A DNA stretch of 64,000 nt from Adineta vaga. Taxonomy: Eukaryota > Animalia > Rotifera. Location of the stretch: NCBI GenBank assembly GCA_021613535.1, contig CP075492.1:2728001-2792000 (forward strand), written 5' to 3'. Positions 1-31,476 of this stretch are shown here, in pieces (positions within the stretch are counted from its first letter, which is position 1; every line of letters starts with the position of its first letter). The translations under genes and the position numbers were made by a program. Under the pieces are notes generated by a model, which saw only the letters and a list, made by a program, of their open reading frames with translations, was not told the origin of the DNA and did no database searches.

Positions 1-3000
1 ACGTGAATGTATTCAAATCGGTGAATTGTTATTTTTTGGTCGAATTGATAATGTACAAGTCAAAATTCGTGGAGCACGTGTTGAATTGGAAGAAGTAGAA
101 GCTATTTGTATGCAACATCCTTTAGTTCAAGAATGTGCTTGTTTTGTTCATGAAAAAAAAGCTCAATTGATTGCAATTATATATAGTACATCATCTGAAT
201 TGTTGACAAATGAACTTCGACAATGGCTTTCTGAACAATTACCTGAATTTGAAGTACCATCTGTATTCATTTTCGTAAATGAACCTTTGCATCGAACAGC
301 AAGTGGAAAAATTGATCGTAAACATTTAATTATTACATATGAAAATTGGAATAATGACAAGAATTCGAAACAACCTGTAATCAATACTTTAAACGATCAA
401 AATGTAGAACGAATCATAAATTTATGGTGTAAAACATTAGAAATTTCAAAAATCAATCATTTAACATTTACTGAACTTGGTGGTCATTCACTTCTTGCTA
501 TTCAACTTCAATGTGACATTCAATTTGAATTTAATATTCACGTACCGATCGAACAATTTTTTTGCCATACAACTCTTGATAATTTAATTGAATTTATCAA
601 TCAATCAACACCGAAACAATCCATTTCTTTACCAAGTAAAAATGATTGTGAAAAAGTTCCATTAACACTTGTTCAGAAAAGTATCTGGATTGCCGATGAA
701 CTTCAGAATAATCTGACAACACCAGTTTATACTGTAACGTGTGCATTCGAAATTTTATCCAATGATATATCAAATGAACGAATCAAGAAAGCAATTTCTA
801 TTCTAATACAACGACATGATAGTCTACGTACAATTTTTTCTCGTGATACATCCGGTGAAATGTATCAAACAGTTACACTATTAAATAGTGAACATTTAAC
901 TATAGCTGATAAAAGTATCTATCAAGAAATTACATTTGAAGATATCAATGAAATTGATCAAATCTTAAATCAATTATCGAAACAAAAATTTTATCTCGAT
1001 CAACCTCAACCACTTTGTCGATTTTATCTTTATTTAAATGCCAATTGTCGAATACTTGCAATTGTACTTCATCATCTCATCATTGATGGTTGGTCAATTG
1101 ATATTTTAACACATGATTTAGAAGCAATTTTATTAGAACAAAATCTTCCACCGATTACAATGCAATTCTATCAATATGCCATAATGGAACGTGAACTAAG
1201 TGCTTCAGCATATGATGATGATCTCATTTATTGGAAAAAACAATTAAGTAATGGAATGTTAACAGCAACACGTCTTCTTCATGATCATGAACCATTATCC
1301 ATAGATAATTCAACAATAGGACGTGTTCAAATCATATTTCCATCTGATATAACGAATTTAATTTATAATATATGCAAAGATAAAGATGTAACACCATTTA
1401 TGATCTTACTAACAACATTTGGTTCATTATTAACACGTTATACACAAGAAACAGATATAATCATTGGTACTCCTGTAGCAAATCGTACTCGATCAGAAAT
1501 CGAACATACTATTGGCATGTTTACAAATATGTTGGTATTACGAATGGACTTATCAACAAATCCTAACTTTAATGATCTATTATCTCAAACAAAAAAGACA
1601 GTACTCGAAGCATTTACTCATCAATCGTTACCATTTGTTAGTTTGTTAAGTGCACTTGAATATAAACAACGAAATCAATATCAAGATACATTCTTTCAAA
1701 TTATGTTAGCCTATCAAAATGTTGGAAATAAATCAAGAAATATCTTCCGAAAAATGACAATACATGAACAAACGGCGAAATTTGAACTTGATGTTCAAAT
1801 ATGGCCAGAAGCAGATAGTATGTTAATTGAAGCTTATTTTCGATTGGATCTTTTTAATACGAATACAATTGAACGATTTCTTGAACATTGGCTTCAACTT
1901 ACACGTTCAGCTTTATCTAAACCAATAGATTCACATATTCATTGGCCAATGACAATAACGAATGAAATATTATCAATTTCATCTCAAGAATCGAATAGAA
2001 ATTTTCTCAATAAAAATCTTTGTCAACTTTTTTTTGAACAAGTTCAACGTACACCAAATACCATTGCTGTTGAAGATAAATCAATTCAATTAACATACAT
2101 AGAAATTTGGCAAAATATCCAACGTTTTAGTCATACTATTCAACAACATTTAAAATCATCATCCAAACAATGCATTGCTATTCGTATGAAACGAGGAATT
2201 GATTTAATTCAAACGATATTAAGTGTACTTCATAGTGCTAATCATTTCGTCTATATTGATCATGCATTACCTATAGAACGACAACATTTTATTATAGAAG
2301 ATACACATGCTTGTCTAATGATTACTGATTCATTTCAATGTCAAGAATCTATATTAACAATAGGATATGAAATTCAACAAACTGAATCCGTTCCATCTAC
2401 AATGGAATCTACTATTGATCCAAATAATCTTGCCTATATTTTGTACACATCAGGTTCGACTGGAACTCCAAAAGGTGTTTGTGCATCACATCGTGCTATT
2501 GTAACACGAATGGTTAATGTTAATTATCATTCAATTAAATTACAAACACGTGTTGGACAATTATCAACATTTAGTTTCGATATGTCAACATTTGAAATGT
2601 TTGGTACTCTATTAAATGGAGGAACATTAGTTATTGTGGCTCCAGAATTAACTTGTTCAATTCGAGCTCTTATGGAATTACATCTTGATATTATAAGTCC
2701 ATCGACAGCTGTTTTAAATATTCTTACACAACAAGAATCATCACAAGAATTTTTTACTTCTTTAAAAAAGATTTATTTTGGTGGTGAAAAAGTCAATATG
2801 AAATATTTACGTCGTGCAATGAAAGATCAAAGTTTAGGAAAGTTTGTCCATGTCTATGGTCCAACAGAGACCACCGTATTTGCCTTATTTTATGAATTAT
2901 TAAAACCAATACCAATAGATGCATTAACTATTCCTATTGGTCAACCATTAACAAATACATTGATTTATATTGTTAATGAATCATTACAATTAACACCACG

Positions 3001-6000
3001 TGGTGTTCCTGGAGAATTATTAATTGGAGGGATTGGTTTAAGTGATGGTTATCATCATCGTTCTGATCTTACAGAACAAAAATTCATTACTAATCCATTT
3101 GGTAAAGGTCTTGTTTATCGTACGGGTGATATTTGTCGTATGTATGATGATGATAATATTGAATTTCTTCGACGTCTTGATACTCAAGTAAAACTTCGTT
3201 CACAACGTCTTGAATTAGGAGAAATCGAATATCATCTTCTTCAACATGAACATATCGCCGATGCTGTTGTTCTCTTACGTGATGATATTGTTGCAGATGA
3301 AAAACATCTTGTTGCTTATATTCAACCAATATCTTCAATCGATTCAGAACAAATACGTCATTTTCTTTCAAAACATCTTCCAGATTATATGATACCAATG
3401 TATATTGTCATAATGTCTCAACTTCCACTTAATCTTGTTGGTAAAGTAGATAAAAAATCACTTCCAAAACCAGAACGACAAAGAAATATTTCCGATATAA
3501 TTCGTCAAATATGTTCTCAAGTATTAAAACAAAATGATATTGATATGAATGAGAATTTCTTTAAATTAGGAGGTCATTCTCTTTCCGCTATGGAAATCAT
3601 TGCAAAAATTTATGAAAAACTTCATATTCAAATTACTATTCCTAATCTATTTCAAGCACAATCAATCGCTGAATTAGCTCGATATGTAGAAAAACAATTG
3701 AAAACTGAGAATAATTCACAAAAATTAGAACATCCAAAAGTAAATAATCCTTATCGTGCACCATTGACATCTTCTCAAAAACAATTTTGGTTATTTTGGA
3801 AATTAAAACCCCAAAGTTCGTATTATAATGTACCCGTAGCTTTGGAAATCAATGGCAAATTAAATATGATGAAATTAAATCGTTCTTTACATTATCTTAT
3901 GTCAAAATATGTTTTATTACGTACTGAATTTAAAGAAGAAAATGATGGAACATTTTGGCAAGAAAAAAAAGATGATTGGAATTTACCTTTGATTGAAGAA
4001 ACAATTGAAGGAACATTACAAACATCAGAAGTTATTCAACGTTTACAATATTATTCACTTAAAGCATTTCAATTAAGTATTGGACAAGTTTGTCGATTTG
4101 TTGTTCTTCATTTATTGAATAATAAACATATTTTATTAATTTGTTTTCATCATATCGTATGTGATGGTCAATCAGCTAGTCAATTTATAAATAATCTATT
4201 TGAATTATATAATTCAAATGATAACGTAGATTTGAATAATGAAAAATCATTTTTTGATTATGCAATTCAAATTGCTGATCATCCATCGTCTAAAGAAGAT
4301 TTAGATCATGTAATTGATTATTTACGAGATTTTCAATCATTAACATTTAATTCAAATTTTGTAAACGAACAAGAACAAGATATTGGTTTTAAATCAGATA
4401 TATCAACATTTCTTGTTCCAACTAATATTGCCGAAAACTTAAGACAATTAGCAACAAATCATTCATGTACTTTACATACGATTTTAATGACATTATTCAA
4501 TTGTTTATTAAGTATATATTGTTCTGATACATCGGATATTATACTTGGTTGTATTATATCTACACGTTCACAACCCGGTGTTACGAATCTATTTGGTCCA
4601 TTAATTAATACAGTACCTATACGTACTCGTCTTCCAAATACTTCAAATACAACATTTCTTGATCTTCTTCATATTGTACGTCAATCAATTCTATTTGGTA
4701 TGGAATATCAAATGGTACCTTTTGCTGATATTGTACAACGTTTACGTTCTGTAAGTACAGATCGAAGTTTGTTTACGTATCTTCCTATTGTTCGAGTTCT
4801 TTTTGAAATGAATTCATACAATTTATTTGATCGATCAAAACAATTTATAGATGGAACTGAATGGATTGGTATTAATGATTCTGGATTACTTTTACCTTAT
4901 ACAAAATCAGATATTGACTTAGAAATTATGGATTATGGTATTAATCAACCAATTCGTATAACTTTTAATCTAAATTGTACATTATTCAAATCAGGAATAG
5001 CAGATGTTATGGCAAATTGTTATCGTTATGCAATTGATCTGATCGTACGTGATTCGACATGTACGAAAGTAAAACTTTGGGATTATTTACATATAATTCA
5101 ACAGAATAAATTTGATTTGATTTTACATGAACAATTTCGAAAACAAGTATGGATTACATCAAATCATCCTGCTGTAATATATCAAGATCAAACATATACA
5201 TATATGGAATTGTTAGAACAAGTAGAGCGTATAGCATCATATTTATGTCATAGAGATATAAAATCGGGTGATGTGATTGCTTTATATATGAATCGTTGTG
5301 CTTTCTTGATTTCAGCTATGTTTGGAGTACTTATGGCTGGTGCTACTTATCTATATTTAGATCCTGAACTACCTGATCAACGTATACGTTCTATGGTTCA
5401 TGATGTTAATGTACGAATAGTGATAGAAAATCAAGAAGGATCAACAATGCATTGTTCAGCTTTTGAAAATATGAAAATATTATCGAATAAAATATTAACA
5501 GAAGAATTCAAAGAAAATATTCAATTTCCAATTATTCATCCATCAGATTATTGTTATCTTATATATACATCAGGTTCAACAGGAGAACCTAAAGGTATGA
5601 AGATTCAACATCAAGCTGTATCAAAACGTATTCAAATGCCTGTAGCTATTACGTCTTCTGCACGAATAGCTCAATTAACATCATGTAGTTTCGATGTTTA
5701 TATCCTGGAAATATATGGTGCCTTACTTCATGGTGCTGCATTAGTCATCTATGATAAAACACTTATCTTTCAACCAGAACTGCTCTCTCAACAAATTCTT
5801 AAACATCATATCACACATATGTACTTACCAACACCGATCTTTAATTTACTTGCTGAATATGTTCCCGATGTTTTTGCAAACATGGAATGTGTCTTATTTG
5901 CTGGAGATAGTGCTAATGCTAAATTCATGCGTTTAGTCTTACAAACAAAAGAACCACCGAAAAGATTGATCAATGCTTATGGACCTACAGAAACAACTTG

Positions 6001-6833
6001 TATTGTAACATGGTATGATACTTCAGTACATTCACCGATTCTTTCCGATGATAGACAAGTATCAATTGGTTTACCTTTACCAGATACACCACTATATATT
6101 GTCAATCCAACAACACTTGAATTAGTAGAAAATAATGAAGAGGGAGAATTAATTATTGGTGGATACGGAGTTTGTGATGGTTATATTAATAATGATCATG
6201 AAACTGAAAGAAAATTTCTTACTAATCAATATGATATGGATGGTAAAATTTATCGTACTGGTGATCGTGTCAAACGATCTCAAGATGGAACTCTTGAATT
6301 TCTTGGTCGTTTCGATACACAAGTTAAGATTAATGGACATCGAATTGAATTAACAGAAATAGAATATCTATTACAAGGATATCCGACAATATCTGAAGCA
6401 ATTGTTGCTGTTCGAAATGATCTTGTACCAAATACACAATCAATCGTCGCTTATGTTCGACCTAAAGAACAGAATGAAAAAGAGATTCTTCAATATTTAA
6501 GCAGTCGATTACCTTCCTATATGTTACCATCATTTGTTGTATCGATTGAACAATTTCCTATTACTTCTGCAGGTGGTAAACGAGATATCAAAAATTTACC
6601 ATCAATAAAAAATAACATAGACAATAAGGATAATCTTTCAATAATAGAATCAAAACTTCAATTCGTATGGAATACTGTTTTAAATAATGGTAAGAATAAT
6701 CATATATTTCAAATGGATGATGATTTTTTCATGTGTGGTGGAACATCAATCAATATCATTCAACTTCATCGACAACTTGAAATACAATTTGGTTTAACAT
6801 TAGATCCTATGTCTTTATTTCAAATACATACTA
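1..6833 (+). CDS. Hybrid NRPS-PKS, NRPS part (5'-truncated by window): partial A - T - C - A - T - C - A - T
   Basis: Frame is open from position 2 (GRIDNVQVKIRGARVELEEVE = A8 core). Carrier motifs LGGHSL (~475), LGGHSL (~3566), CGGTSI (~6734). Condensation motifs HHLIIDG (~1070), HHIVCDG (~4148). A cores YTSGSTGTPKG/YGPTE/YRTGD and YTSGSTGEPKG/YGPTE/YRTGD. No introns. Confidence 0.96.
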
Positions 6834-6834
6834 A

Positions 6835-9800
6835 TCTTCACAACTATCTTGGCTTGCTTCTTTTCAACCAAATCTGGAATTTATAAAGGAAGTTCCACTG
6901 TCAAACATACCAACAAAAGGAATTGCTATTATTGGTATGTCAGCTCGATATGGTACAATAGAAACAGCTGCTGATCTATGGACAGCACTTCGTAATGGTA
7001 CAGATTGTTGTACTCATATTACGCATGAAGAATTATTACAACAAAATCCATCGATGGCTAGTATGTTAAATGTTAATCCCAATTATGTACATGCTGGTTG
7101 TACGATGACGAATGCTTTATGTTTTGATCATGTATTTTTTGGTATGACTAAACGAGATGCTGAAATTACCGATCCACAACATCGTATTATGTTAGAAGCT
7201 ACTTATGAAGCTTTAGAAAATGCTGGTATTGTACCACAAGAATATTCGGGAACAATTGGTATGTTTGGAGCAGTTTATCGAAATACATATGCTGATTATT
7301 ATAATCTTTTACGTGCAAATCCTTATGAAATCTATGATGCAACGAAAGCAAGTATGGGTATTGCTACATTTGATTCAGCAACAATAATGCGTGTAGAAAT
7401 TGGTAATATGGTTGATGGTGCACCAACATTTGTTTCTTATAAATTAGGTTTTAATGGACCTTCAATGGCAATACAAACAGCATGTTCATCTTCGGGAACT
7501 GCACTACATATGGCATTGCGTAGTCTCGAAGCAGGTGACTGTAGCATAGCTATTGTAGCTGGTGTTTCGATTACATTTCCATTAGATATGGGTTATAATT
7601 ATCAGCCAGGAATGATTATGTCAAAGACAGGTATATGTCGATCATTTGATGAAAGTGCTGATGGAGTTGTTGGTGGTGACGGAGCTGGTGTGGTAGTACT
7701 TATGAAAGCTACAGAAGCTCTATCAGCTGGTTATTCTATTCGTAGTATAATTACAGGATATGCCATTAATAATGATGGTCAAAATAAAACATCTTTTTCA
7801 ACAACTAGTCCAGATACACAAACTTTGTGTATGCAGAAGGCATTGTCAAGTGCAAATATTCATTCTCCACAAGAAGAAATTGATTACATTGAAGCACATG
7901 GTCCTGGTACACAAGTTGGAGATCTATTAGAGATTCAAGCACTGACAAAAGCATACTCTTCTCAAAATGAATCAATAACACGTCAACTTTATTTAGGCTC
8001 TATTAAAACAAATATAGGCCATACAGCACATGCAGCAAGTTTAGCTGGTTTAATTAAAGTAGTTCTATCTTTAGAAGCTGGTGAAATACCACCAACACTT
8101 AATTTTCATCGATTTAGTCCAGTTGTTGCACGTTTTCAACCACCATTTCAAGTAAATACTCATACAATTCCATGGCCAACGAATGATATTGAGATTCGAC
8201 CTCGACGTGCAGCATTAAATGCTTTGGGACAAGGTGGAACAAATACACATTTTATCATCGAACAAAATTATTCAATGTCAGAAGTTCATAGATCGTTTGG
8301 ACCACAACTCTTCGTTCTCAGTGCAAAAACAGAAATTGCTTTATCAAATGTCAAATTACGTCTTCTCGAACATTTGTCTAATAAATCAGATGCTGTAAAT
8401 TTACTTAATATGTCTTTTACATTAGCATGTGGTCGAATAGCTTATGATCGACGATACTTTGCTGTTGCTTCTACAGTTGACGAGCTAAAAGACCAATTAT
8501 CCAATCCCAACATGTCCCTTAACAATCATGAAAACACAAAGTCGCAAATAGTTTTTGTCTTTCCTGGACAAGGTGCTCAATATGCTGGTATGGCTCGACA
8601 ATTATACGATCGTTTTCCACAATCATGTGCAACAATAATAGATACTTGTTTAGAAGAACTACATGCATTCGATAGTGATATGGAACAAAAAATTCGTTCA
8701 TGTCTCTTCAATGAATCTTTCAATGATCATGGTATACTTGCACAATATGCTCAAATTACTTTATTCATAGTTGAATATAGTTTAACTCAGATTTTTCTTT
8801 CATTAAATATTCATCCAAATTATATTATTGGACATAGTAGTGGGGAATTTGTTGCTGCTTGTCTAGCCGAAGTAATGACAATGAAAGATGCTATAAGATT
8901 ACTTGCACGACGATGTCAACTAATGATGACAGCAGAAACAGGTACTATGCTTGCTGTAGAAATTGATTTGAAAGATGATATATCTGAATTTGCAACAAAA
9001 TATGATGTAGATTTAGCTGTTATTAATTCCTCTACTCAATGTGTTTATTCTGGTTCGATATCGAATATACAAAAATTCGAGATTGATATGCGAAATCAAG
9101 GAAAGAAAGTGAAATTACTCAATACTTTTACTGGATTTCATTCTCGTCTAATGGAACCAATCTGTCAAAAGCTTGAAAACGAATTTAAGACTATTACATT
9201 ACGAGAACCAACAATTCCTATTATTTCAACAGTAACTGGACAACTTGTTCATGCAGGTGAAATGACACAAACAAAATATTGGTGTAATCATCTACGAAAA
9301 CCCGTACTCTTTGGTCCATGTCTTTCATCTATGGTAACAAACAATCTTATCAAAGATGATAAATCATTAATATTTATTCCCGTTGGTCCAGGTAAAGCAT
9401 TACATTCACTTATAACTCGTGCTCTATCAATGGCAACTATTATTTCATCTCCATTATTACCTGATTGTCCATCCGCATTACTTTATACATTAGGTTCGAT
9501 ATGGTTAAATATGATTCCAATCAATTGGACAGAATATTATCGTAATACAAATGCTCGACGTATAGTTTTACCAAATTATCCATTTGAAAGAACTATATGT
9601 GTTGCTGATAATCGAGCAACAGCTATTACTAATACAATTTTCGAATCACCAAATCGAACAAGATCATGGTCTACTCCTCATAATGTACCTGTACATATAC
9701 CAACAACAACAGATTTATTTGAATTACTTAACAAACAAAAATCTATCTGTGAACAAACTAAATCACCTCAAAATCGAAGAAATTCACTTCCATGGAAGAT

Positions 9801-11829
9801 TAACAAACGATCGTCATCAATAAGTGCTAAACTATTAAATTTATCAACGAATACATGTACATCAATACAAACGATACCTTCAATTACAGATAATATGCAA
9901 TTAAATCTTGGTTCTTATAGTTCTCTATTCGTATTGGCTCTGTATTATGAAGCAATCGAATTAGATTTAATTCAAAGTAATGATTTAGTAATACAATATA
10001 TTCCTAACGAATATCAACAATCCAATATTACTCTTACAATTGAAGATCTTCTTCAAAGTAATATAGAAATAAATATGGAATGTTTTACACCAAATGATTT
10101 ACTCGATGCATTACAACAAATAAGAATTAAATCAAAAACTGAAACTGATCGTATTCCAACTAGTTTTTCACTCTCATTATTAGGACATATATTAGGTATT
10201 TTACATGACGTATCATACGAAGAAGTCGTCTACGATCGTATTATTCTTCCATTGAAATTACAACAAACAAAAGTAGATATTTCTCTATCCAATGAAGCTT
10301 ATTATCCATCTACAGCTATACGAAGTTGTATTGATGATCTCGAAATGATTTTCAATTCGTCTAACAATAATTCAATATCGACAGGATTTCAAAAGGCAGC
10401 ACTTCTATCAAATCAATTATATTATACAAATACTGAACAACTTATTGCAATCACTTATCCTAATGATTCAAATAAAATATTGATTATAGCTAGTCAACAT
10501 CCACTTCAACAATCCAATGTTGAAGTAATTATGAAGTCTACGTATTCTTTAAGTAATGAAAAAGTTTGTCAATCAATTACTAATTATGAAGAACTTGTAC
10601 AAAAATATTTAGTACAACTTCTTGGCTCATCAGGTCATACAATGGTATCAAATTTTTCTTCTCTAACACCATTTGAACAATTAGGTATTGATTCTTTACA
10701 AGTTATTACATTTGTTGAACTTTTATCTCAACACTTCGGTATCGAATTATCTGTCGATATCATGTCAAAATATCCGAATATGAAAAGTTTATCTGATTAT
10801 TTAAACCAAATCTGTTCTAAAGATGATAATCATCATAAAGTAAAAGAATCATTTCAAGAATATATTCTAAATAAAGAAGCTGGTATGCCACGTGTATATG
10901 AATCTATTACGAACAATCGATCTCTATCAATACTTTTATCATTCATTACAAATAATAAAGTGAAATTACTTAAACAATTACATCAAGATGGTGCTTTACT
11001 ATTTCGAGGATTTGCTATTGATAGTGCTGAAGATTTTTCGCAAGTCGTTGAATTATTAGCTGATAAGGATAAGACATTTCTTGATTATAGAGATGGTATT
11101 TCTCCACGTACTCGTATTACAGATAAAGTATTTACTTCAACTGAATATCCACGACAATTTGATATGGCTTTACATAATGAAATGTCTTATTCACATACGA
11201 TGCCTTCAATGATTTTCTTCTATTGTCAGCTACCACCGGATGAAGGTGCAGGTGGTGAAACACCGATTGGAAACTCTGCTGCAATTTACAATGCTATTGA
11301 TGCACATATTCGACAAGATTTTATTGATAAACAATTACTCTATATTACTAATTTACCAAGTAAAACAAATGGAATTAGTCTTGGTAAATCATGGCAAGAT
11401 ACATATCAAACTGAATCAAAGAAAGATGTTGAAATATTTCTCAAAGATAAAGATATTCAATTCAAATGGTTAACAGACGATCGTCTGAGAACAATACGAC
11501 GTATTGAAGGTATTCGAAAACATCAAGATACTGATGAAATGGTATGGTGTAATCATGCTCATTTGTTTCATCCAACAGATCTGAATATATCGACACGTCA
11601 AACTCTACAGAAGCGTTTAGAACCATTAGATATGCCTAAAAATTGTTTTTTTGGTAATGGAGATATGATTCCAGATACATCACTTGATCATATTCGTCAA
11701 GTATTGAAACAACATGAAATAAAATGGCCATGGAAAAAAGGAGATATACTTGTCTTAGATAATCTTCGTACAGCACATGGTCGTGCTTCATTTCATGGAG
11801 AACGACGTATTTTGGTTGCAATGTGTTAA
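6835..11829 (+). CDS. Hybrid NRPS-PKS, PKS part: KS - AT - degenerate beta-lactamase-like - ACP - TauD/SyrP-like Fe(II)/2OG dioxygenase; continues the upstream ORF across a 1-nt frameshift
   Basis: Frame is open from 6835 (SSQLSWLASF...KGIAIIGMSARY, the canonical KS N-terminus, upstream of the called ATG). KS motifs DPQHR, TACSSS, EAHGPGT, KTNIGH. AT motifs VFPGQGAQ, GHSSGE, GFHS. ACP motif LGIDSL (10681). TauD motifs LLFRGF, LHNEMSY, GGETP, WKKGDILVLDN..AHGR. Confidence 0.94.
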   Translation, partial: SSQLSWLASFQPNLEFIKEVPLSNIPTKGIAIIGMSARYGTIETAADLWTALRNGTDCCTHITHEELLQQNPSMASMLNVNPNYVHAGCTMTNALCFDHVFFGMTKRDAEITDPQHRIMLEATYEALENAGIVPQEYSGTIGMFGAVYRNTYADYYNLLRANPYEIYDATKASMGIATFDSATIMRVEIGNMVDGAPTFVSYKLGFNGPSMAIQTACSSSGTALHMALRSLEAGDCSIAIVAGVSITFPLDMGYNYQPGMIMSKTGICRSFDESADGVVGGDGAGVVVLMKATEALSAGYSIRSIITGYAINNDGQNKTSFSTTSPDTQTLCMQKALSSANIHSPQEEIDYIEAHGPGTQVGDLLEIQALTKAYSSQNESITRQLYLGSIKTNIGHTAHAASLAGLIKVVLSLEAGEIPPTLNFHRFSPVVARFQPPFQVNTHTIPWPTNDIEIRPRRAALNALGQGGTNTHFIIEQNYSMSEVHRSFGPQLFVLSAKTEIALSNVKLRLLEHLSNKSDAVNLLNMSFTLACGRIAYDRRYFAVASTVDELKDQLSNPNMSLNNHENTKSQIVFVFPGQGAQYAGMARQLYDRFPQSCATIIDTCLEELHAFDSDMEQKIRSCLFNESFNDHGILAQYAQITLFIVEYSLTQIFLSLNIHPNYIIGHSSGEFVAACLAEVMTMKDAIRLLARRCQLMMTAETGTMLAVEIDLKDDISEFATKYDVDLAVINSSTQCVYSGSISNIQKFEIDMRNQGKKVKLLNTFTGFHSRLMEPICQKLENEFKTITLREPTIPIISTVTGQLVHAGEMTQTKYWCNHLRKPVLFGPCLSSMVTNNLIKDDKSLIFIPVGPGKALHSLITRALSMATIISSPLLPDCPSALLYTLGSIWLNMIPINWTEYYRNTNARRIVLPNYPFERTICVADNRATAITNTIFESPNRTRSWSTPHNVPVHIPTTTDLFELLNKQKSICEQTKSPQNRRNSLPWKINKRSSSISAKLLNLSTNTCTSIQTIPSITDNMQLNLGSYSSLFVLALYYEAIELDLIQSNDLVIQYIPNEYQQSNITLTIEDLLQSNIEINMECFTPNDLLDALQQIRIKSKTETDRIPTSFSLSLLGHILGILHDVSYEEVVYDRIILPLKLQQTKVDISLSNEAYYPSTAIRSCIDDLEMIFNSSNNNSISTGFQKAALLSNQLYYTNTEQLIAITYPNDSNKILIIASQHPLQQSNVEVIMKSTYSLSNEKVCQSITNYEELVQKYLVQLLGSSGHTMVSNFSSLTPFEQLGIDSLQVITFVELLSQHFGIELSVDIMSKYPNMKSLSDYLNQICSKDDNHHKVKESFQEYILNKEAGMPRVYESITNNRSLSILLSFITNNKVKLLKQLHQDGALLFRGFAIDSAEDFSQVVELLADKDKTFLDYRDGISPRTRITDKVFTSTEYPRQFDMALHNEMSYSHTMPSMIFFYCQLPPDEGAGGETPIGNSAAIYNAIDAHIRQDFIDKQLLYITNLPSKTNGISLGKSWQDTYQTESKKDVEIFLKDKDIQFKWLTDDRLRTIRRIEGIRKHQDTDEMVWCNHAHLFHPTDLNISTRQTLQKRLEPLDMPKNCFFGNGDMIPDTSLDHIRQVLKQHEIKWPWKKGDILVLDNLRTAHGRASFHGERRILVAMC

Positions 11830-11991
11830 TATTTTATTTTTATGAACTATCATCAATATTATAATAAACTTTTTTTATGTTCTATGTTAATCTCGCACTA
11901 TTTTATGCACTAAATGATTCATATTTTTGAATAAAACTTCGAAAAAAATTGATTTGATACGATTTCACAAGTGTCATATTTGAAAATTGAA

Positions 11992-14454
11992 TTATTTCGA
12001 TGGTAAGTTGGAATATACTGTCATGAAGAAGATCAGTGGTACGAAAAGAGCAAACCAAGATGAGAACGTCGAAGGATGACCACCATTATTCAAAGAATGT
12101 GAGAATGAGCAACTAGATGGGTTTTTATCACATGTATCCATTTCAAGTGCTTCTCCTCCGTGTAAGCTATTATGTTCATACAACTCTAAATATTCTGAAG
12201 ATGATGTAGTTACGGTAGTCTCTGCTGTTAATGAAGTATCGTAAGATTCAATTGTAGTTGTTGTTGTTGTTGTTGTAACATACTGGTTGTTATATTCAAA
12301 AAATGCTGTAGTTGTTGTTATATAGTGGGTGTCAGATGTAACAATTGTCGTTGATGTGAATGTTGATCTCATTGGTGAAATCAAATGTTGATCATCAGCT
12401 GATATTTGAATTGGAACTTCACGTAGAATCATATTGTCATTATTTCCGTTGACTCGTTTTTCTACGGCAATAAATGCTGTGTATGGAGATAGAATATTGT
12501 ATTTGAGAGATAATTCAGTAATCTGCTTCTTTTTCATTTCTTCGTTTTTCATTATTTTTTCTTTTAAATCTGTTTGATCTTGAAAACGTGACTGTAATGA
12601 TCCTGTACTCAATTCTTTCGCATGTTCTAATTCGTGAATAAGTGCTTTAGCAGCAAGACGTGAAATTGTTCCAGTATTTTCCACGATTAAGATTTGATCA
12701 AAATGAGCTTCACCTAGTTGATGATCATTTTCATCTATATAAAATCCTACAGAAAAATTATCATCTAAAGGTAAGGTAATCGTGGTATTTGTAAGACCAT
12801 AGATGTTTAAACGATCTTTAGCATAAACTGGAGGTAGTTGAGCAGGTGCTGTATAGACACTGGTCTCACCTAAATTCCATTTAGCTCGAATACCAGTAAT
12901 ACTTGGCTGTAAAGCTCTGTCTAATTGTTCTTTTACATAGATGTCAACTCTTTCATGAGGTGGAATAAAAACAAATCGACCATTTGTTGCACGAGCAAGA
13001 CCTTTGATCAAAGCGCGACTAGGTGACATTCCCAAACCAAAGGAAAAAATTCGAGTAGATGAAGACATTGTTCGACACAAATCCAATACTTGAGAAACAT
13101 CCATAATCTGACCGTCCGTTAGAAGAAAGATTTGGCGTGAACGTCCTTTATTTGGCGGATGATTTTTCAACCATTGTAATGGCGCGAACTGAAAAGAAGA
13201 GACAACAAGAAATATAGATCAAATGTAAAAATATCGAACTTACTAATTCAGTCCCACCTAAATCAGCTTGCATCTGTTCGACAATTTTTTGTGCTTGTTG
13301 AAGATTTACGTCATTAGCGATAACAGTACTTTCTGGGAATAATGGTGAATAAGTTGAACCAAATCGAATGATATTAAAGTAAGAATATGGTGGAAGATTT
13401 TGAAGGAAAAGTATAACAGCTTTCTTAGTCAAACCAATTTTGTCTTCTGAATACATTGATCCACTACAATCTACCACAAAAATAAATTCATTTGTTTGAT
13501 TATCATTTTCTCCTTGTCGACAATCCTCTTCCGTAGGAAAAAAACTAACCATTACAGCATTAGAATCCACAGTTAAAATAGTATTGGTTTGTCTTTTCAT
13601 AAGTTCAATATTGATTAGAATATCTCGATCTAAATGAGTATTTTCATGAGCAAATGTCACAACATAAATATCACTTCGATGAACATCTATTTCAATTTGA
13701 TGAGATGATGAGCTCACTTTACGGATTAATTCGCCTTTTGAATCACTTATCTTTTTAATATTACAACGAAAATTAATAGTATATGGACTATTCTGTACGT
13801 ATTGAATATTAGGACTTGTAAATGATGATGATCCAGTCTGTTGAGAATTGTATCGAGGTGCAATAGTCGTAGGAATCACAAAACGAATAATAGATCCATT
13901 TATCAAATCTAATTCAGTGACATATGATATAGTAATTGTACATTCAGTCAATGGTGGTAATGCACCAATATTAATAATAAACATGTCTGGAGATTTTTCA
14001 TCTTGTTCTAATAGATAAGCTCCATGATTATTTTTTAATGCATCAATATATTCTTTCTGTGCTACATTTTTCTCTTTCAATTCAGCAAATATTTCTCGAT
14101 CATTAATACGTGCAATAAATGAATAAATTGCTGCTTGTTCTTCGATAGGAAAATAATAAACAGCTTCAAATGGTTTGTTTTCATTGTTATAAAATATTTG
14201 AGTTATAGTTACATCAGCTGCAAATGAATTAATTGTTGCATCAATATCTACTTTCTTCAAAGGAACATAAAGTGATGATGATGATAAATCACTATTAGTA
14301 GTTCGTTTGATCTCAAGTCGCTGACCATTTAGTTGAACAAACAAGGATAAGAATATCCCACCAATGATCAATTTTTGCCTATTTTCAACTATAGATATAG
14401 GGATGTCTAGTAAGTCTCATATATGAACATATAAAAATACTTACAAAATCGCAT
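11992..14454 (-). CDS. VIT-VWA domain protein (VWA5A/ITIH-like) with signal peptide, Thr-rich stalk and C-terminal hydrophobic tail; 3 exons
   Basis: VIT motifs (VPLKKVDI..EAVYYFPI..NIGALPP); VWA MIDAS DCSGSM, DLGGTE, LLTDG, FSFGLG. GT-AG introns 14389-14444 and 13189-13243 join the exons in frame (MRFFENR.., GGTEL|FAPLQWLK). Confidence 0.88.
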
Positions 14455-18629: not shown

Positions 18630-19665
18630 TTATGTTTGTGGTACCACTTGATTTCGTTTTTCTTTGAAATTTTTGCAATATATTTTAGAGAAGACATGAA
18701 TAAACTGTCGTCGAAATCGATGTGATGCACATATGTATATATAAAATGGACACTAGAATCATATAAATATTTTATTTACATTAAATTTTAGTTTTTTTCT
18801 TTTTATCAATACTCACTGCGTAATATATCCAAAAAATAGTAAAAGTAACAGTAGAACTGAGATCAAGTTGTGCTTTAAGAACTAAATCATTATTAACATT
18901 GGTAGTTAAGGCAATAATAAACGTGATCGTATATGGTGACAAAACAAATGTGTTTATAACTCCTTGTACTAGAACTATTAATGTTAATTGCTTATCCAAT
19001 TCACGTCGAATAAGTGGTACAATATAATAACGCATTTTTTGAATATTTCGGTAAGCCATTACACCAAATGTGATTGTTATGAAAATAGGTGAAAATCCGA
19101 TCAGAACAGGTGAATTAAAATAAGTACGAACCTGTATATAAATTGTGTTTGTCATAGTACAAATGACTTGGCCGGTTGTTGGTGAGACAACATGATTCAA
19201 AAAAATCAAATAAGGAACTCCGTATAAAAACCAAATAATACTTAAGATAAATATTAAACGTCGAGCAAGTTTCATATTACATAATTGTTGTAAACGTGGA
19301 TGAGAACATGTTGCACAATATTGATCGATCACTGCAAGACAAAAACAATTCAAAGAAAATATTGTACAAATAGCAGTACAAGATAATCGAAATTTACAAT
19401 AAAACAATGATATTTCACTACCATCCGATCCAATCATTACGCTTAATATACGTGATAAGGCGGTAGTGAATAATTGACCAATATTTAAAATAGACATAAT
19501 TAATAAATAAAATGCACATGAACTTTGTCGAAATGTTTGAAGACTAAGAAATACAGTTATATTGAATATATTACCCAATAAACCTGCGATAAAAACGAAT
19601 AAACCAACGTAGATAAGTACTTGTTTTTCAGCAAATTGTAAAGATGAAATATAGGATGACGACAT
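18630..19665 (-). CDS. Orphan class A (rhodopsin-like) GPCR; 2 exons
   Basis: 7 hydrophobic segments, GLLGNIFN, CK(F)R, CLAVIDQY. Intron 18753-18816 adds CPFYIYICASHRFRRQF (TM7/helix 8). Confidence 0.88.
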
Positions 19666-24985: not shown

Positions 24986-25939
24986 ATGTCGGATGGTGCG
25001 GAAATTCTTCGTCTTCAAACTATTTCGAAAATTTTCGATGGCTATGTAATGCTTATTCTTGTTGGTATAGGAACAGTGGGGAATTTATTGAATATTTTTG
25101 TCTTCATACGTCTGAAAATGCTTCGTCAAATGCCAACTCCTGTTTTCATGATCACTTCAAACATTGGTAGTTTAATACTATTTTGGTCCTCTCGTTTTCC
25201 TCGTTGCATTCTTAATATCACCGGTATTGATCTTCTTGTAGGTTCAATATTCTATTGCAAAGTTCGATGGTTGTTAGGACGTTGGAGTCTTAACATGCCA
25301 TTTACATGTATCTGTTTAGCAAGTATCGATCGGTTTTTTAATACTTCACGCAATGTACGCTATCATCATTTCTTTACTCTAAAACGAGCTTACAGTATAG
25401 TGATCATATTTAGTCTTGTCTATCTAATCATCTTTATTCCAGATGCTATTTACTATTCGGGATATTCGTGCACAGCTTCAGCCAAGGATCGTGCTACTTA
25501 CAAAGACTTTGTCGCTTATTTTAATTTGATTGCCACCAATATTTTATCAATGATCATTCTCGGTATTTTTAGTTTACTTACATGGTACAATCTTTGTTAT
25601 GGGACAAGTGTTGGACGTAATCGTCTTCAACAGCAAGTTAATCGAATGATGATGGTTGAATTTGCAATGGCATTCGTTACTACATTACCTAATTTTATCT
25701 ACAATATTTATGCACAAGCTACTCAATCGACAGTAAAATCTCAATTAAGATTAACACAAGAAAGTCTGTGGTCAACTGTGAGTGCTACTATCAATTTTAC
25801 AATACACGCGGGAACATTCTACATGTATATGGTTGTGTCTCCAGCATATAGACGGAATGTACGAAGAGCTATGTGGGTACAGAAACAAAATCATGTTATA
25901 CCCCAAAAAGTACAATTACAAAATCTTCGTTTTTTTTAA
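24986..25939 (+). CDS. Orphan class A GPCR, intronless
   Basis: 7 TM segments, GTVGNLLN, CKVR, CLASIDRF, FYMYMVVSPAYR. Confidence 0.9.
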   Translation: MSDGAEILRLQTISKIFDGYVMLILVGIGTVGNLLNIFVFIRLKMLRQMPTPVFMITSNIGSLILFWSSRFPRCILNITGIDLLVGSIFYCKVRWLLGRWSLNMPFTCICLASIDRFFNTSRNVRYHHFFTLKRAYSIVIIFSLVYLIIFIPDAIYYSGYSCTASAKDRATYKDFVAYFNLIATNILSMIILGIFSLLTWYNLCYGTSVGRNRLQQQVNRMMMVEFAMAFVTTLPNFIYNIYAQATQSTVKSQLRLTQESLWSTVSATINFTIHAGTFYMYMVVSPAYRRNVRRAMWVQKQNHVIPQKVQLQNLRFF

Positions 25940-28651: not shown

Positions 28652-29497
28652 ATGAAATTCTTCCAACTAATTCTTTCATTATCTTTTATGTTCCATACAG
28701 TTTCGTGTCAATCAAAGCCGAATAATACATACAATGTTCCTTTACTTGATTTTATTGATAATTTTATTAATAAATCTATGTTATGTTTCACATTTCCATG
28801 TTGTCCAATTGCCTTAACATTTGATGATGGTCCTGATGGTGGTGGTGGAGCTACTGACGCTATTATTAATTATTTACATGGCAATAAGATTCCAGGTACA
28901 TTTTTTATCAACACTAAAACTTGGGTTGATGTCACTACTGATCTAATTGCTCAAAAATCAATTAAGAATATTGTTGAGTATGGATTTAATCTTGGAACAC
29001 ATACTATTCATCATAAAGATTTATCTATTCTGTCCGTTGATGATATACATAATGAAATTGTTGGTGTTCAAACAACTCTAGATAAATTTATATCACCTTC
29101 ACCACATCTATCGTTATTTCGTGCACCATACGGTCATCCATACGATGTTGGTAGTCAATTGCAGATGAATAGGGTATCGAAAATTGCAGCAGATGCGGCT
29201 TATTTTCATGTTGCTTGGCAAATTGATTCAGAAGATTATAATTGTGGTAAGAATATTACTTGTGTTACTGAACCAATATTTAAAGCTATTGATAATGGAC
29301 AATGGGGTGTTATATTGATGCATTTTGTCTATCAAAATACCGCTAATGCTTTGCCATTCTTAATTACTGGACTCAAACAAAGAAAATGTACGTTTTTCAC
29401 TATTGAACAATTGATTCATGCTAAATATGGAAAATTTTCTGAAGAAATCATGTACGATTATAATCACCAAAGCAAAAGTCTTTCAATTACATCTTGA
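28652..29497 (+). CDS. Secreted CE4/NodB polysaccharide (chitin/peptidoglycan) deacetylase
   Basis: Signal peptide and all five CE4 motifs: TFDDGP, HTIHH, RAPYG, DSEDY, LMH; intronless. Confidence 0.92.
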   Translation: MKFFQLILSLSFMFHTVSCQSKPNNTYNVPLLDFIDNFINKSMLCFTFPCCPIALTFDDGPDGGGGATDAIINYLHGNKIPGTFFINTKTWVDVTTDLIAQKSIKNIVEYGFNLGTHTIHHKDLSILSVDDIHNEIVGVQTTLDKFISPSPHLSLFRAPYGHPYDVGSQLQMNRVSKIAADAAYFHVAWQIDSEDYNCGKNITCVTEPIFKAIDNGQWGVILMHFVYQNTANALPFLITGLKQRKCTFFTIEQLIHAKYGKFSEEIMYDYNHQSKSLSITS

Positions 29498-30457: not shown

Positions 30458-31476
30458 ATGATTGAATATCCCAGTACAAATCAATTTCATAATGTGATCG
30501 AATCGATACGAAAGAATCCATATCGATATAAAATTGAACAAGGAAAAATCTATCCGAAACTAAAATTTATTGGTACTGTGAAATTACATGGCACAAATAC
30601 TGCGATTGTTTATCAAAAGAATGCACGATACCATTGTCAATCTCGACATTTGATCATATCATCAGAAATGGATAATCATGGTTTTGCACGTTTTATGTAT
30701 CCATTATCAGAGAAATTTCTTCAAGAACGTATTTTTATGAATTGTCCACTACTTCGAAGACATTACGATCGTGGAAATACAGTTGTAATTTATGGAGAAT
30801 GGTGTGGTGGAAATATTCAGAAAAATGTTGCTCTTTGTGCTGTTCGAAAAATGTTTGTTATTTTTAAGATTCGAATTGGAGATTCGAAACCACCAGTTTG
30901 GATTGATCCAAAACATTGGTCAACTCTGCAATGGCATGAACAATCTATTTACAATATATTTAATTTTCCTACGTATGAAGTAGACATTGATTTCAATCAA
31001 CTTGAACTTGCTCAAAAACAACTTGGAGAGATTACGAATACTGTTGAACAAGAATGTCCAGTTGGAATGTATTTTAATCAGAAAGGCTATATGGAGAAGG
31101 TGTTATTTGGACTGAATGGTTACAATCATTTGGTATTCTTTCATTTAAAGTCAAAGGTGAAATGCATGCAATAACTAAAGGCGGATCATTAGCACCGATT
31201 GCTACAGAAATATTCCATAGTATTCATGAGTTCATCGAATATGCTTGTACAGAAAATCGTATGAATCAATCAATGGATTATCTTCGTGAAATTCAATTAG
31301 AGATTGAAATGCATAATATTGATACATTTTTAGAATGGCTCATAGGTGACATCAAGAAAGAAGAAACAAATACAATTAAGAATTCAAATTTAAATTTAGG
31401 AAAAGTTATTTCTGCCATTACAAAGAAAGCTACTGTTTGGTTTGAACAACAATTATTACGAAATAATGTACAGTAA
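30458..31476 (+). CDS. Rnl2-family (T4 RNA ligase 2-like) RNA ligase, frameshifted at ~31091
   Basis: Motif I VKLHGTN, SR, motif III YGEWCGGNIQK, FVIFKI. Removing 2 nt in tatat gives motif IV GEGVIW and motif V FKVKGE, in frame with ORF 31162-31476. Confidence 0.85.

Follow-up and report, generated by a model that had tools for sequence, protein, structure and literature searches.

A TauD-terminated hybrid peptide-polyketide synthetase with a degenerate beta-lactamase-fold domain in the genome of the bdelloid rotifer Adineta vaga

At present, the strongest candidates for antimicrobial chemistry encoded by an animal genome are the nonribosomal peptide synthetase (NRPS) and polyketide synthase (PKS) genes of bdelloid rotifers (Nowell et al., 2024), and products are known for none of them. 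This study asked whether a very large NRPS-PKS gene in Adineta vaga is an intact gene of the animal, what chain it would assemble, and how that chain would leave an enzyme that lacks a thioesterase. The window, that is, the whole stretch of 64,000 nucleotides analyzed, corresponds to positions 2,728,001 to 2,792,000 of contig CP075492.1 (G000:C3:2728001-2792000, hereafter C3) in assembly GCA_021613535.1, a genome of 100.8 Mb in six contigs with approximately 30% GC. The results revealed that the synthetase is a real, host-integrated, horizontally acquired NRPS-PKS gene. New in this analysis are the identity of its domain X, the existence of an intact allele, a conserved starter pocket that looks like those for beta-amino acids, and the retention of the whole architecture beyond the bdelloids.

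Pfam searches combined with motif inspection identified 13 domains in the order A1-T1-C1-A2-T2-C2-A3-T3-KS-AT-X-ACP-TauD (A, adenylation; T, carrier; C, condensation; KS, ketosynthase; AT, acyltransferase; ACP, acyl carrier protein), which is the order given in the original prediction, and catalytic motifs were intact in all of them except X. The start codon lies at window position -1186 (L006:8814; G000:C3:2726814), and module 1 is mostly upstream of the window. In the frame spanning 2-6883, Pfam assigned AMP-binding_C, PP, C, AMP-binding, PP, C, AMP-binding, and PP; in the frame spanning 6841-11826, it assigned KS, the KS-AT linker, AT, a weak Beta-lactamase match, PP, and TauD. The core motif designated A3 (TSGSTGxPKG type) occurs in the three AMP-binding domains at residues 173, 1212, and 2252. 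The motif checks agreed with the earlier claims of intact condensation motifs of the HHxxxDG type (HHLIIDG in C1 and HHIVCDG in C2; Pfam Condensation, 438 bits), four carrier serines (GGHSL, GGHSL, GGTSI, and GIDSL), a complete KS Cys-His-His set (TACSS, EAHGPGT, and NIGH), and an AT nucleophile motif (GHSSGE). At the HAFH/YASH position the AT carries GFHS, which we take to be malonyl-like. The TauD domain keeps the HxE...H...R residues as HNE...H-G-R in alignment with At3g21360 (1y0z, E 3e-38), its best solved relative, and these residues are conserved in the orthologues.

Consistent with the claim that no thioesterase is present, Pfam detected no thioesterase, reductase (R), or terminal C domain in either open reading frame (ORF) or in the orthologues P0122, P0127, and P0128. 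Ketoreductase (KR), dehydratase, and enoylreductase domains were likewise not found in the synthetase by Pfam and motif inspection. Three A domains and one KS-AT-ACP set lacking these reductive domains fit the proposal of at least a tripeptide with one unreduced ketide; the domain content establishes a chain of three residues plus one malonyl unit, with the beta-ketone unreduced.

The reference sequence is not a single ORF. Frame 2 ends at a TAA at 6884-6886, and frame 1, which encodes the KS, opens only past a TAA at 6832-6834, within the T3-KS linker; alignment with a paralogue revealed that the window copy carries a 1-nt deletion at about 6832. We compared public contigs over window positions 6700-12699; such contigs can demonstrate that a variant is present and are unable to show that it is absent. 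Contigs from runs X1 (2024), X5 (2021), and X8 (2015), which belong to three studies, carry an additional T behind 6833 together with two linked substitutions, 6811 G>A and 6828 A>G, and in this form the gene is an uninterrupted ORF of 4,338 codons. The X1 contig differs from the window by only three letters and one gap over 6 kb, and the contigs with the additional T are therefore not derived from the paralogue. In two DNA runs the depth of this contig is approximately half that of its flanks (138 versus 264 and 121 versus 263), so that it probably represents one of two alleles. Because single-nucleotide polymorphisms are linked to the additional T, a genuine second haplotype is a better explanation than an error in sequencing. 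The deleted form is either the other allele or an assembly error, and the intact form exists in either case. An intron spanning the break was considered and rejected: the paralogue is collinear and in frame there, the contigs show a simple additional T, and no joint was reported across the break. The original prediction, which described an intron-free assembly line, had not noticed the break between T3 and KS.

The same chromosome holds a second, paralogous copy of the complete gene at C3:16,426,261-16,439,284 (L004+L007+L005+L008), with 86% identity across the part that was aligned. In this paralogue single nucleotides are missing at the window equivalents of 1435 (in C1) and 5166 (in A3), and its T3-KS junction is continuous; the published catalogue lists it as region3.7 and as "intact" (Nowell et al., 2024; PMC11258130). 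Between the two A. vaga copies, the ratio of nonsynonymous to synonymous substitution rates (dN/dS) is 0.30-0.32 overall, with dS about 0.26; among the domains, TauD (0.17) and KS (0.24) have the lowest values and X (0.48) has the highest. With X-ACP-TauD as the query, an exhaustive profile-free search identified full-length 13-domain orthologues in Didymodactylos carnosus (4384 aa, 48% identity) and Rotaria socialis (4417 aa, 43% identity).

These results bear on the possibility that both A. vaga copies are decaying pseudogenes, broken relics of an old transfer that make no product. The frame break in the window copy, the two 1-nt deletions in the paralogue, the "1 frameshift" that Nowell et al. 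give for this locus, and their report that most NRP/PKS genes are barely expressed in control conditions (PMC11258130) are what such decay would leave. But the form without the break occurs in the contigs of three studies, dN/dS is only about 0.3 and falls to 0.17 in TauD, every catalytic motif is intact, and intact orthologues of 4.4 thousand residues exist in two other bdelloid families. We therefore consider decay of both copies unlikely, while granting it some weight.

The gene is also anchored in the rotifer chromosome. It lies on a 20-Mb chromosome-scale contig, and its GC content (0.31) and GC content at third codon positions (GC3; 0.13) are the same as those of neighboring genes. The next ORF downstream is convergent and lies on the minus strand, with its end at 11992 and a gap of 162 nt to the synthetase; it encodes a VIT-VWA protein and has a canonical 3' splice site (ttttcag) near 13190, as expected from the earlier description of a spliced animal-type gene at approximately 160 bp. 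Contigs of 3.9 kb from independent DNA runs of 2015 and 2021 span the last 75 nt of the synthetase, the spacer, and the VWA gene. A join between contaminant DNA and rotifer sequence, which would be suggested only by the bacterial-type gene content and the lack of introns and for which there is no positive evidence, is contradicted by these bridging contigs, by the chromosome-scale contig with its uniform GC and GC3, by the paralogue on the same chromosome, and by the orthologues in other bdelloid genera. This explanation is refuted as far as the data go and retains practically no probability; the claim that the assembly line is embedded in an animal chromosome was borne out.

The locus had been catalogued before. 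It is region3.3 on Chrom_3 of A. vaga Av20 (GCA_021613535.1) in Nowell et al. (2024; Nat Commun 15:5787), with identical coding sequence coordinates, among roughly 40 Av20 NRP/PKS clusters (PMC11258130). Their row for region3.3 (2706884..2759476) lists "1 frameshift," 4316 aa, the additional domain CAS_like, inclusion in the three-domain set, and coding sequences at 2726814-2734886 and 2734937-2739829 (PMC11258130, Supplementary Data 9). These two coding sequences are exactly the two ORFs found here, the first ending at window position 6886 and the second spanning 6937-11829. The suggestion of a candidate new animal-made natural product is thus not upheld as stated, since the locus, its frameshift, and its CAS-like (TauD) end were already on record. 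A 2023 survey counted five NRPS-PKS hybrids in A. vaga (PMC10531068), and neither publication takes the analysis of region3.3 further. The 2024 entry comes without domain-level analysis, product, or allele information, and the present analysis adds the domain and allele detail. In the accessible parts of the 2024 supplements, neither expression values nor a TauD or InterPro annotation was found for region3.3. Supplementary Data 9 reports no condensation domain for this region; Pfam returned two complete C domains in our analysis.

Domain X, between AT and ACP, occupies the place of the reductive loop. It gave a marginal Pfam Beta-lactamase match (PF00144, 30 bits), and searches of the PDB and NCBIfam aligned it with class C enzymes. 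When X was modeled with AlphaFold2 from an alignment of nine sequences (pLDDT 74, pTM 0.75), the model matched AmpC, CMY-2, ACT-1, ClbP, and FmtA in Foldseek at a probability of 1.00 and TM scores of 0.55-0.65, with E values of 1e-9 for AmpC, CMY-2, and ClbP. X is therefore a degenerate domain of the class C beta-lactamase/penicillin-binding protein (PBP) fold. A KR or other reductive domain was rejected, since Pfam, NCBIfam, PDB sequence searches, and fold searches all pointed to class C beta-lactamase.

The fold of X is the same as that of AmpC, ClbP, and the SurE-like PBP-type thioesterases, but X lacks Lys67 and Tyr150, and its nucleophile serine is not conserved in the family. At the position of S64-x-x-K67 of AmpC, the lysine is always replaced by serine (S/F/C-x-S/T-S): A. 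vaga has GSYSS at this site, Rotaria and Didymodactylos have GF(A/S/Y)(S/T)S, and P0127 and P0129, two proteins from metagenome contigs, have (G/A)C(L/I)SS. At the nucleophile position, most of the sequences examined from Rotaria and Didymodactylos have Phe. Tyr150 (YxN) is Pro in A. vaga, is absent from all bdelloid copies, and is kept only in P0127 and P0129, whose beta-lactamase-like domain also keeps HTSGL and has Cys at the nucleophile position. Because the SxxK lysine and Tyr150 are lost, X is probably not catalytic and most likely structural.

On these motif losses, X was rejected as an active PBP-type thioesterase. The losses also bear on the proposal that X is the release catalyst and, like SurE, cyclizes the chain head to tail through a free beta-amino group. 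Such a role would suit a PBP/beta-lactamase fold adjoining the ACP of an enzyme with no other release domain, in which the starter amine is free because there is no starter C domain. It is nevertheless very unlikely: serine replaces the SxxK lysine throughout the family, most of the Rotaria and Didymodactylos copies examined have Phe in place of the nucleophile, no bdelloid copy retains Tyr150, and dN/dS is higher in X than in any other domain.

The substrates were approached through ten-residue pocket codes; for these, the three A domains were aligned with their orthologues, and the FDxS, GGE, NxYGPTE, and A10 motifs served as anchors. The A1 code is GDWTISLNDK, and it is conserved throughout the family as [GVT]DW[TV][IV]SL[NGS]DK. 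Its acidic residue (Asp) stands at pocket position 236 instead of 235. An Asp at 236 within a VDxVISxxDK-like code is presumably the hallmark of beta-alanine-activating domains such as that of Ebony; no reference code confirming this was found in the literature searched. The A1 pocket thus looks like a beta-amino-acid pocket, which remains a lead. The A2 pocket (DMFSYGVVFK), which is variable among orthologues, looks aliphatic or hydrophobic, and the A3 pocket (DVLYLAACIK), which is conserved in bdelloids, resembles aromatic-type pockets. Both are unlike the Asp code, and none of the three pockets has the Lys/His of that code. The reading of A3 as a glycine domain, after its top PDB match LgrA, was discarded: two unremarkable A-domain matches added up to the high score, and the pocket residues differ.

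The TauD domain directly follows the PKS carrier. In the PKS half, the ACP ends near residue 1325 and TauD begins near residue 1374, with no Pfam domain between them. As the most constrained domain, placed only a short linker behind the ACP, TauD would most naturally act in cis on an intermediate bound to the carrier. In a quick, unrooted maximum-likelihood tree, the TauD domains of the bdelloid and metagenome proteins formed one clade (99% support) apart from many bacterial synthetases that end in C-TauD. The bdelloid clade also had 99% support and comprised two sub-lineages, each with members from both Rotaria and Didymodactylos, a pattern suggesting that a duplication preceded the separation of these genera; the two A. 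vaga copies were recent duplicates inside one sub-lineage. The only genome match to the TauD domain besides the two synthetase copies was a separate, apparently spliced TauD-like gene at C5:5243104-5244088, 37% identical.

A siderophore-type role for TauD was also considered. The serobactin, cupriachelin, and taiwachelin synthetases likewise have a TauD/CAS-like Fe(II)/2-oxoglutarate (2OG) dioxygenase fused into the assembly line, where it acts on carrier-bound substrates, and in a 2022 review every NRPS-integrated TauD domain described so far is an aspartate beta-hydroxylase from a siderophore line, with T-bound aspartate as its substrate (PMC8949500). By analogy, the domain here would beta-hydroxylate a T-bound amino acid as in the serobactin and cupriachelin NRPSs and so create a metal-binding hydroxy acid, the product would be a metallophore, and the enzyme would not necessarily be the last protein of its pathway. 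Many bacterial megasynthases terminate in C-TauD (for example, P0052, P0136, and P0143), as this proposal would have it. Here, in contrast, TauD stands directly after a PKS ACP with a linker of only about 50 residues and no C-like interface domain, its clade is separate from the bacterial C-TauD clade, and no second NRPS/PKS gene lies nearby. The A pockets of the synthetase are also without the basic residues of the Asp code. A siderophore-type role is consequently improbable.

The architecture is retained outside the bdelloids. Two proteins from metagenome contigs, P0127 (4670 aa) and P0128 (4922 aa), have the same 13-domain order, and a fragment, P0129 (cluster-mate P0286, 5786 aa), has the beta-lactamase-ACP-TauD end. 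The metagenome copies (L010:10001-24013, L012:8001-22769, and L011:10001-12991) lie on contigs with 23-42% GC whose neighboring genes are eukaryotic (WD40, WW/FF, RasGAP, RCC1, an ECH gene split into short ORFs, NOX, Ost5, and XRN). The metagenome contigs include ERZ25074310 ctg12163 and ERZ26167977 ctg9563. The metagenome proteins are only 27% identical to the A. vaga NRPS half, and no close named relative was found for the NOX gene adjoining P0128; they are therefore probably not bdelloid. The 13-domain synthetase may define a conserved eukaryotic family, comprising the bdelloids and at least two AT-rich microbial eukaryotes, with an undescribed mode of off-loading, and the rotifers' donor may have been eukaryotic rather than bacterial. 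In such a family, off-loading may be an oxidative, TauD-dependent release or a release assisted by the remodeled PBP-like domain. We regard this broader proposal as tentative and its probability as low.

Taken together, the explanation that we favor, with somewhat more confidence than doubt, is that a long-resident, horizontally acquired gene encodes a hybrid NRPS-PKS of 4,338 residues that works as follows. Module 1 (A1-T1) would load the starter, probably a beta-amino acid, with beta-alanine as the leading candidate. Modules 2 and 3, each C-A-T, would add two alpha-amino acids, for which the pockets appear hydrophobic and aromatic-like, respectively. KS-AT-ACP would then add one malonyl unit and leave the beta-ketone unreduced, while X, a serine beta-lactamase/PBP fold that has lost its catalytic residues, would most likely contribute only structure. 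The C-terminal TauD would hydroxylate the carrier-bound intermediate in cis. Release would probably proceed by intramolecular cyclization of the gamma-amido-beta-ketoacyl thioester (tetramate type) or through a hydrolase in trans, and an ABCB transporter encoded head-to-head with the synthetase would likely export the product. The product would most likely be a tripeptidyl beta-keto acid or a tetramate-like compound, hydroxylated in cis. Domain content and motifs, the fold of X, the intact allele, selection, conservation between species, and linkage to host genes were observed directly; the substrates, the TauD target, export, and transcription, as well as the oxidation in cis and the non-standard release of the original prediction, are inferred.

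Chemically, the easiest release may be an attack of the amide nitrogen on the gamma-amido-beta-ketoacyl thioester, which would give an N-acyl tetramate; hydrolysis in trans may equally occur, and TauD (through oxidation) or X (through a residual function) may take part. The tenuazonic acid synthetase TAS1 has the order C-A-T-KS, and NRPS-to-PKS tetramate lines release their chains by tetramate or Dieckmann-type cyclization. TAS1 and the N-acyl tetramate lines share with the A. vaga synthetase the extension of an aminoacyl or peptidyl chain by one malonyl unit to an unreduced beta-keto thioester and the lack of a canonical thioesterase. TAS1, however, ends in its KS and has no AT, ACP, or TauD, whereas the synthetase described here has all three.

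Evidence on transcription came from public contig sets. In X1-X4, all from one 2024 study, the sets comprised 36-39 Mb and contained 96-99% of the sampled gene words; in similar-sized runs of a 2022 study, 0-24% of the gene words were present. This pattern fits RNA libraries with condition-dependent expression, and transcription of the gene is therefore probable.

Several observations weigh against the favored explanation. The kinds of the sequencing runs were guessed, and the X1 contig is not confined to the synthetase but continues through the 162-nt spacer into the convergent gene. About 30 kb around the gene yielded no release enzyme, hydrolase, or second NRPS/PKS gene. The frame break in the reference and the two 1-nt deletions in the paralogue indicate that decay of some copies is real or possible, and constraint on the gene is weakest in X (dN/dS, 0.48). 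The pocket codes were derived from motif anchoring and not from a structure-based aligner, the beta-alanine reference code was not found in the literature searched, and homologue and PDB searches with A1 returned only generic NRPS matches and no named beta-alanine enzyme.

The synthetase is compact, consisting of a single intron-free ORF with an adjacent exporter, and it is conserved in three bdelloid families and beyond. Its compactness, exporter, and conservation, together with the lack of a canonical release domain, make it a tractable target for heterologous expression and possibly a means of studying an undescribed off-loading route. Two facts matter both for the choice of the allele to be cloned and for product prediction: alongside the broken reference haplotype there is an intact form, and X is a dead beta-lactamase fold and not a reductive domain. 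The coordinates of the features are collected in Table 1, including the AATAAA that had been noted after the stop codon and that in fact occurs there twice.

Table 1. Positions of the synthetase domains and associated features in the window
Feature	Position	Strand	Basis
A1 C-terminal sub-domain (starter adenylation)	1..330	+	Pfam AMP-binding_C, residues 31-103 of window 2-6883
T1 carrier (GGHSL)	410..622	+	Pfam PP-binding/ACP, residues 137-207; serine motif
C1 condensation (HHLIIDG)	653..1924	+	Pfam Condensation, residues 218-641; motif
A2 adenylation	2006..3448	+	Pfam AMP-binding; core motifs A3, A6, A7, A10; pocket code DMFSYGVVFK
T2 carrier (GGHSL)	3497..3688	+	Pfam PP-binding, residues 1166-1229
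C2 condensation (HHIVCDG)	3734..5041	+	Pfam Condensation, second stretch; motif
A3 adenylation	5141..6511	+	Pfam AMP-binding, residues 1714-2061; motifs; pocket code DVLYLAACIK
T3 carrier (GGTSI)	6641..6838	+	Pfam PP-binding, third stretch; sequence
Frame break, reference haplotype	6832..6886	+	1-nt deletion 6833/6834
KS (TACSS, HGPGT, NIGH)	6919..8109	+	Pfam ketoacyl-synt, Ketoacyl-synt_C; sequence
AT (GHSSGE; GFHS)	8551..9423	+	Pfam Acyl_transf_1, residues 571-861; sequence
X, degenerate class C beta-lactamase/PBP fold	9715..10584	+	Pfam PF00144, 30 bits; AmpC alignment; AlphaFold2 and Foldseek
ACP (LGIDSL)	10603..10815	+	Pfam PP-binding, residues 1276-1321; motif
TauD/CAS-like Fe(II)/2-oxoglutarate dioxygenase, C-terminal	10960..11829	+	Pfam TauD, E 2e-37, 130 bits
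Stop codon of synthetase	11827-11829	+	Sequence
AATAAA polyadenylation-signal-like hexamers	11863..11868 and 11930-11935	+	Read from sequence

The ABCB-type transporter gene and the VIT-VWA gene were searched exon by exon. The former is a multi-exon gene (ABC_membrane and ABC_tran exons) on the minus strand at L006:~3277-7223 (C3:2721277-2725223), head-to-head upstream of the synthetase, and an AT-rich spacer of approximately 600 nt precedes the synthetase ATG on that side. Its position makes this transporter a likely candidate exporter.

Within about 30 kb, the neighbors comprise the VIT-VWA gene, a Castor/Pollux-type channel, G protein-coupled receptors (GPCRs), a polysaccharide deacetylase, and an RNA ligase. 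ORFs with the polysaccharide deacetylase and RNA ligase domains lie at window positions 28652-29497 and 30458-31174, respectively; RNA ligases are one horizontally acquired class that Nowell et al. reported to be pathogen-induced (PMC11258130). Metazoan-type ORFs for rhodopsin-family GPCRs lie at 18781-19665 and 24986-25939, and host-type and foreign-type genes are interleaved around the cluster. Inside the VWA gene, at 12383-12425, several extra contigs in all four runs end or diverge, with loose ends at 12383; this site is probably a dispersed repeat.

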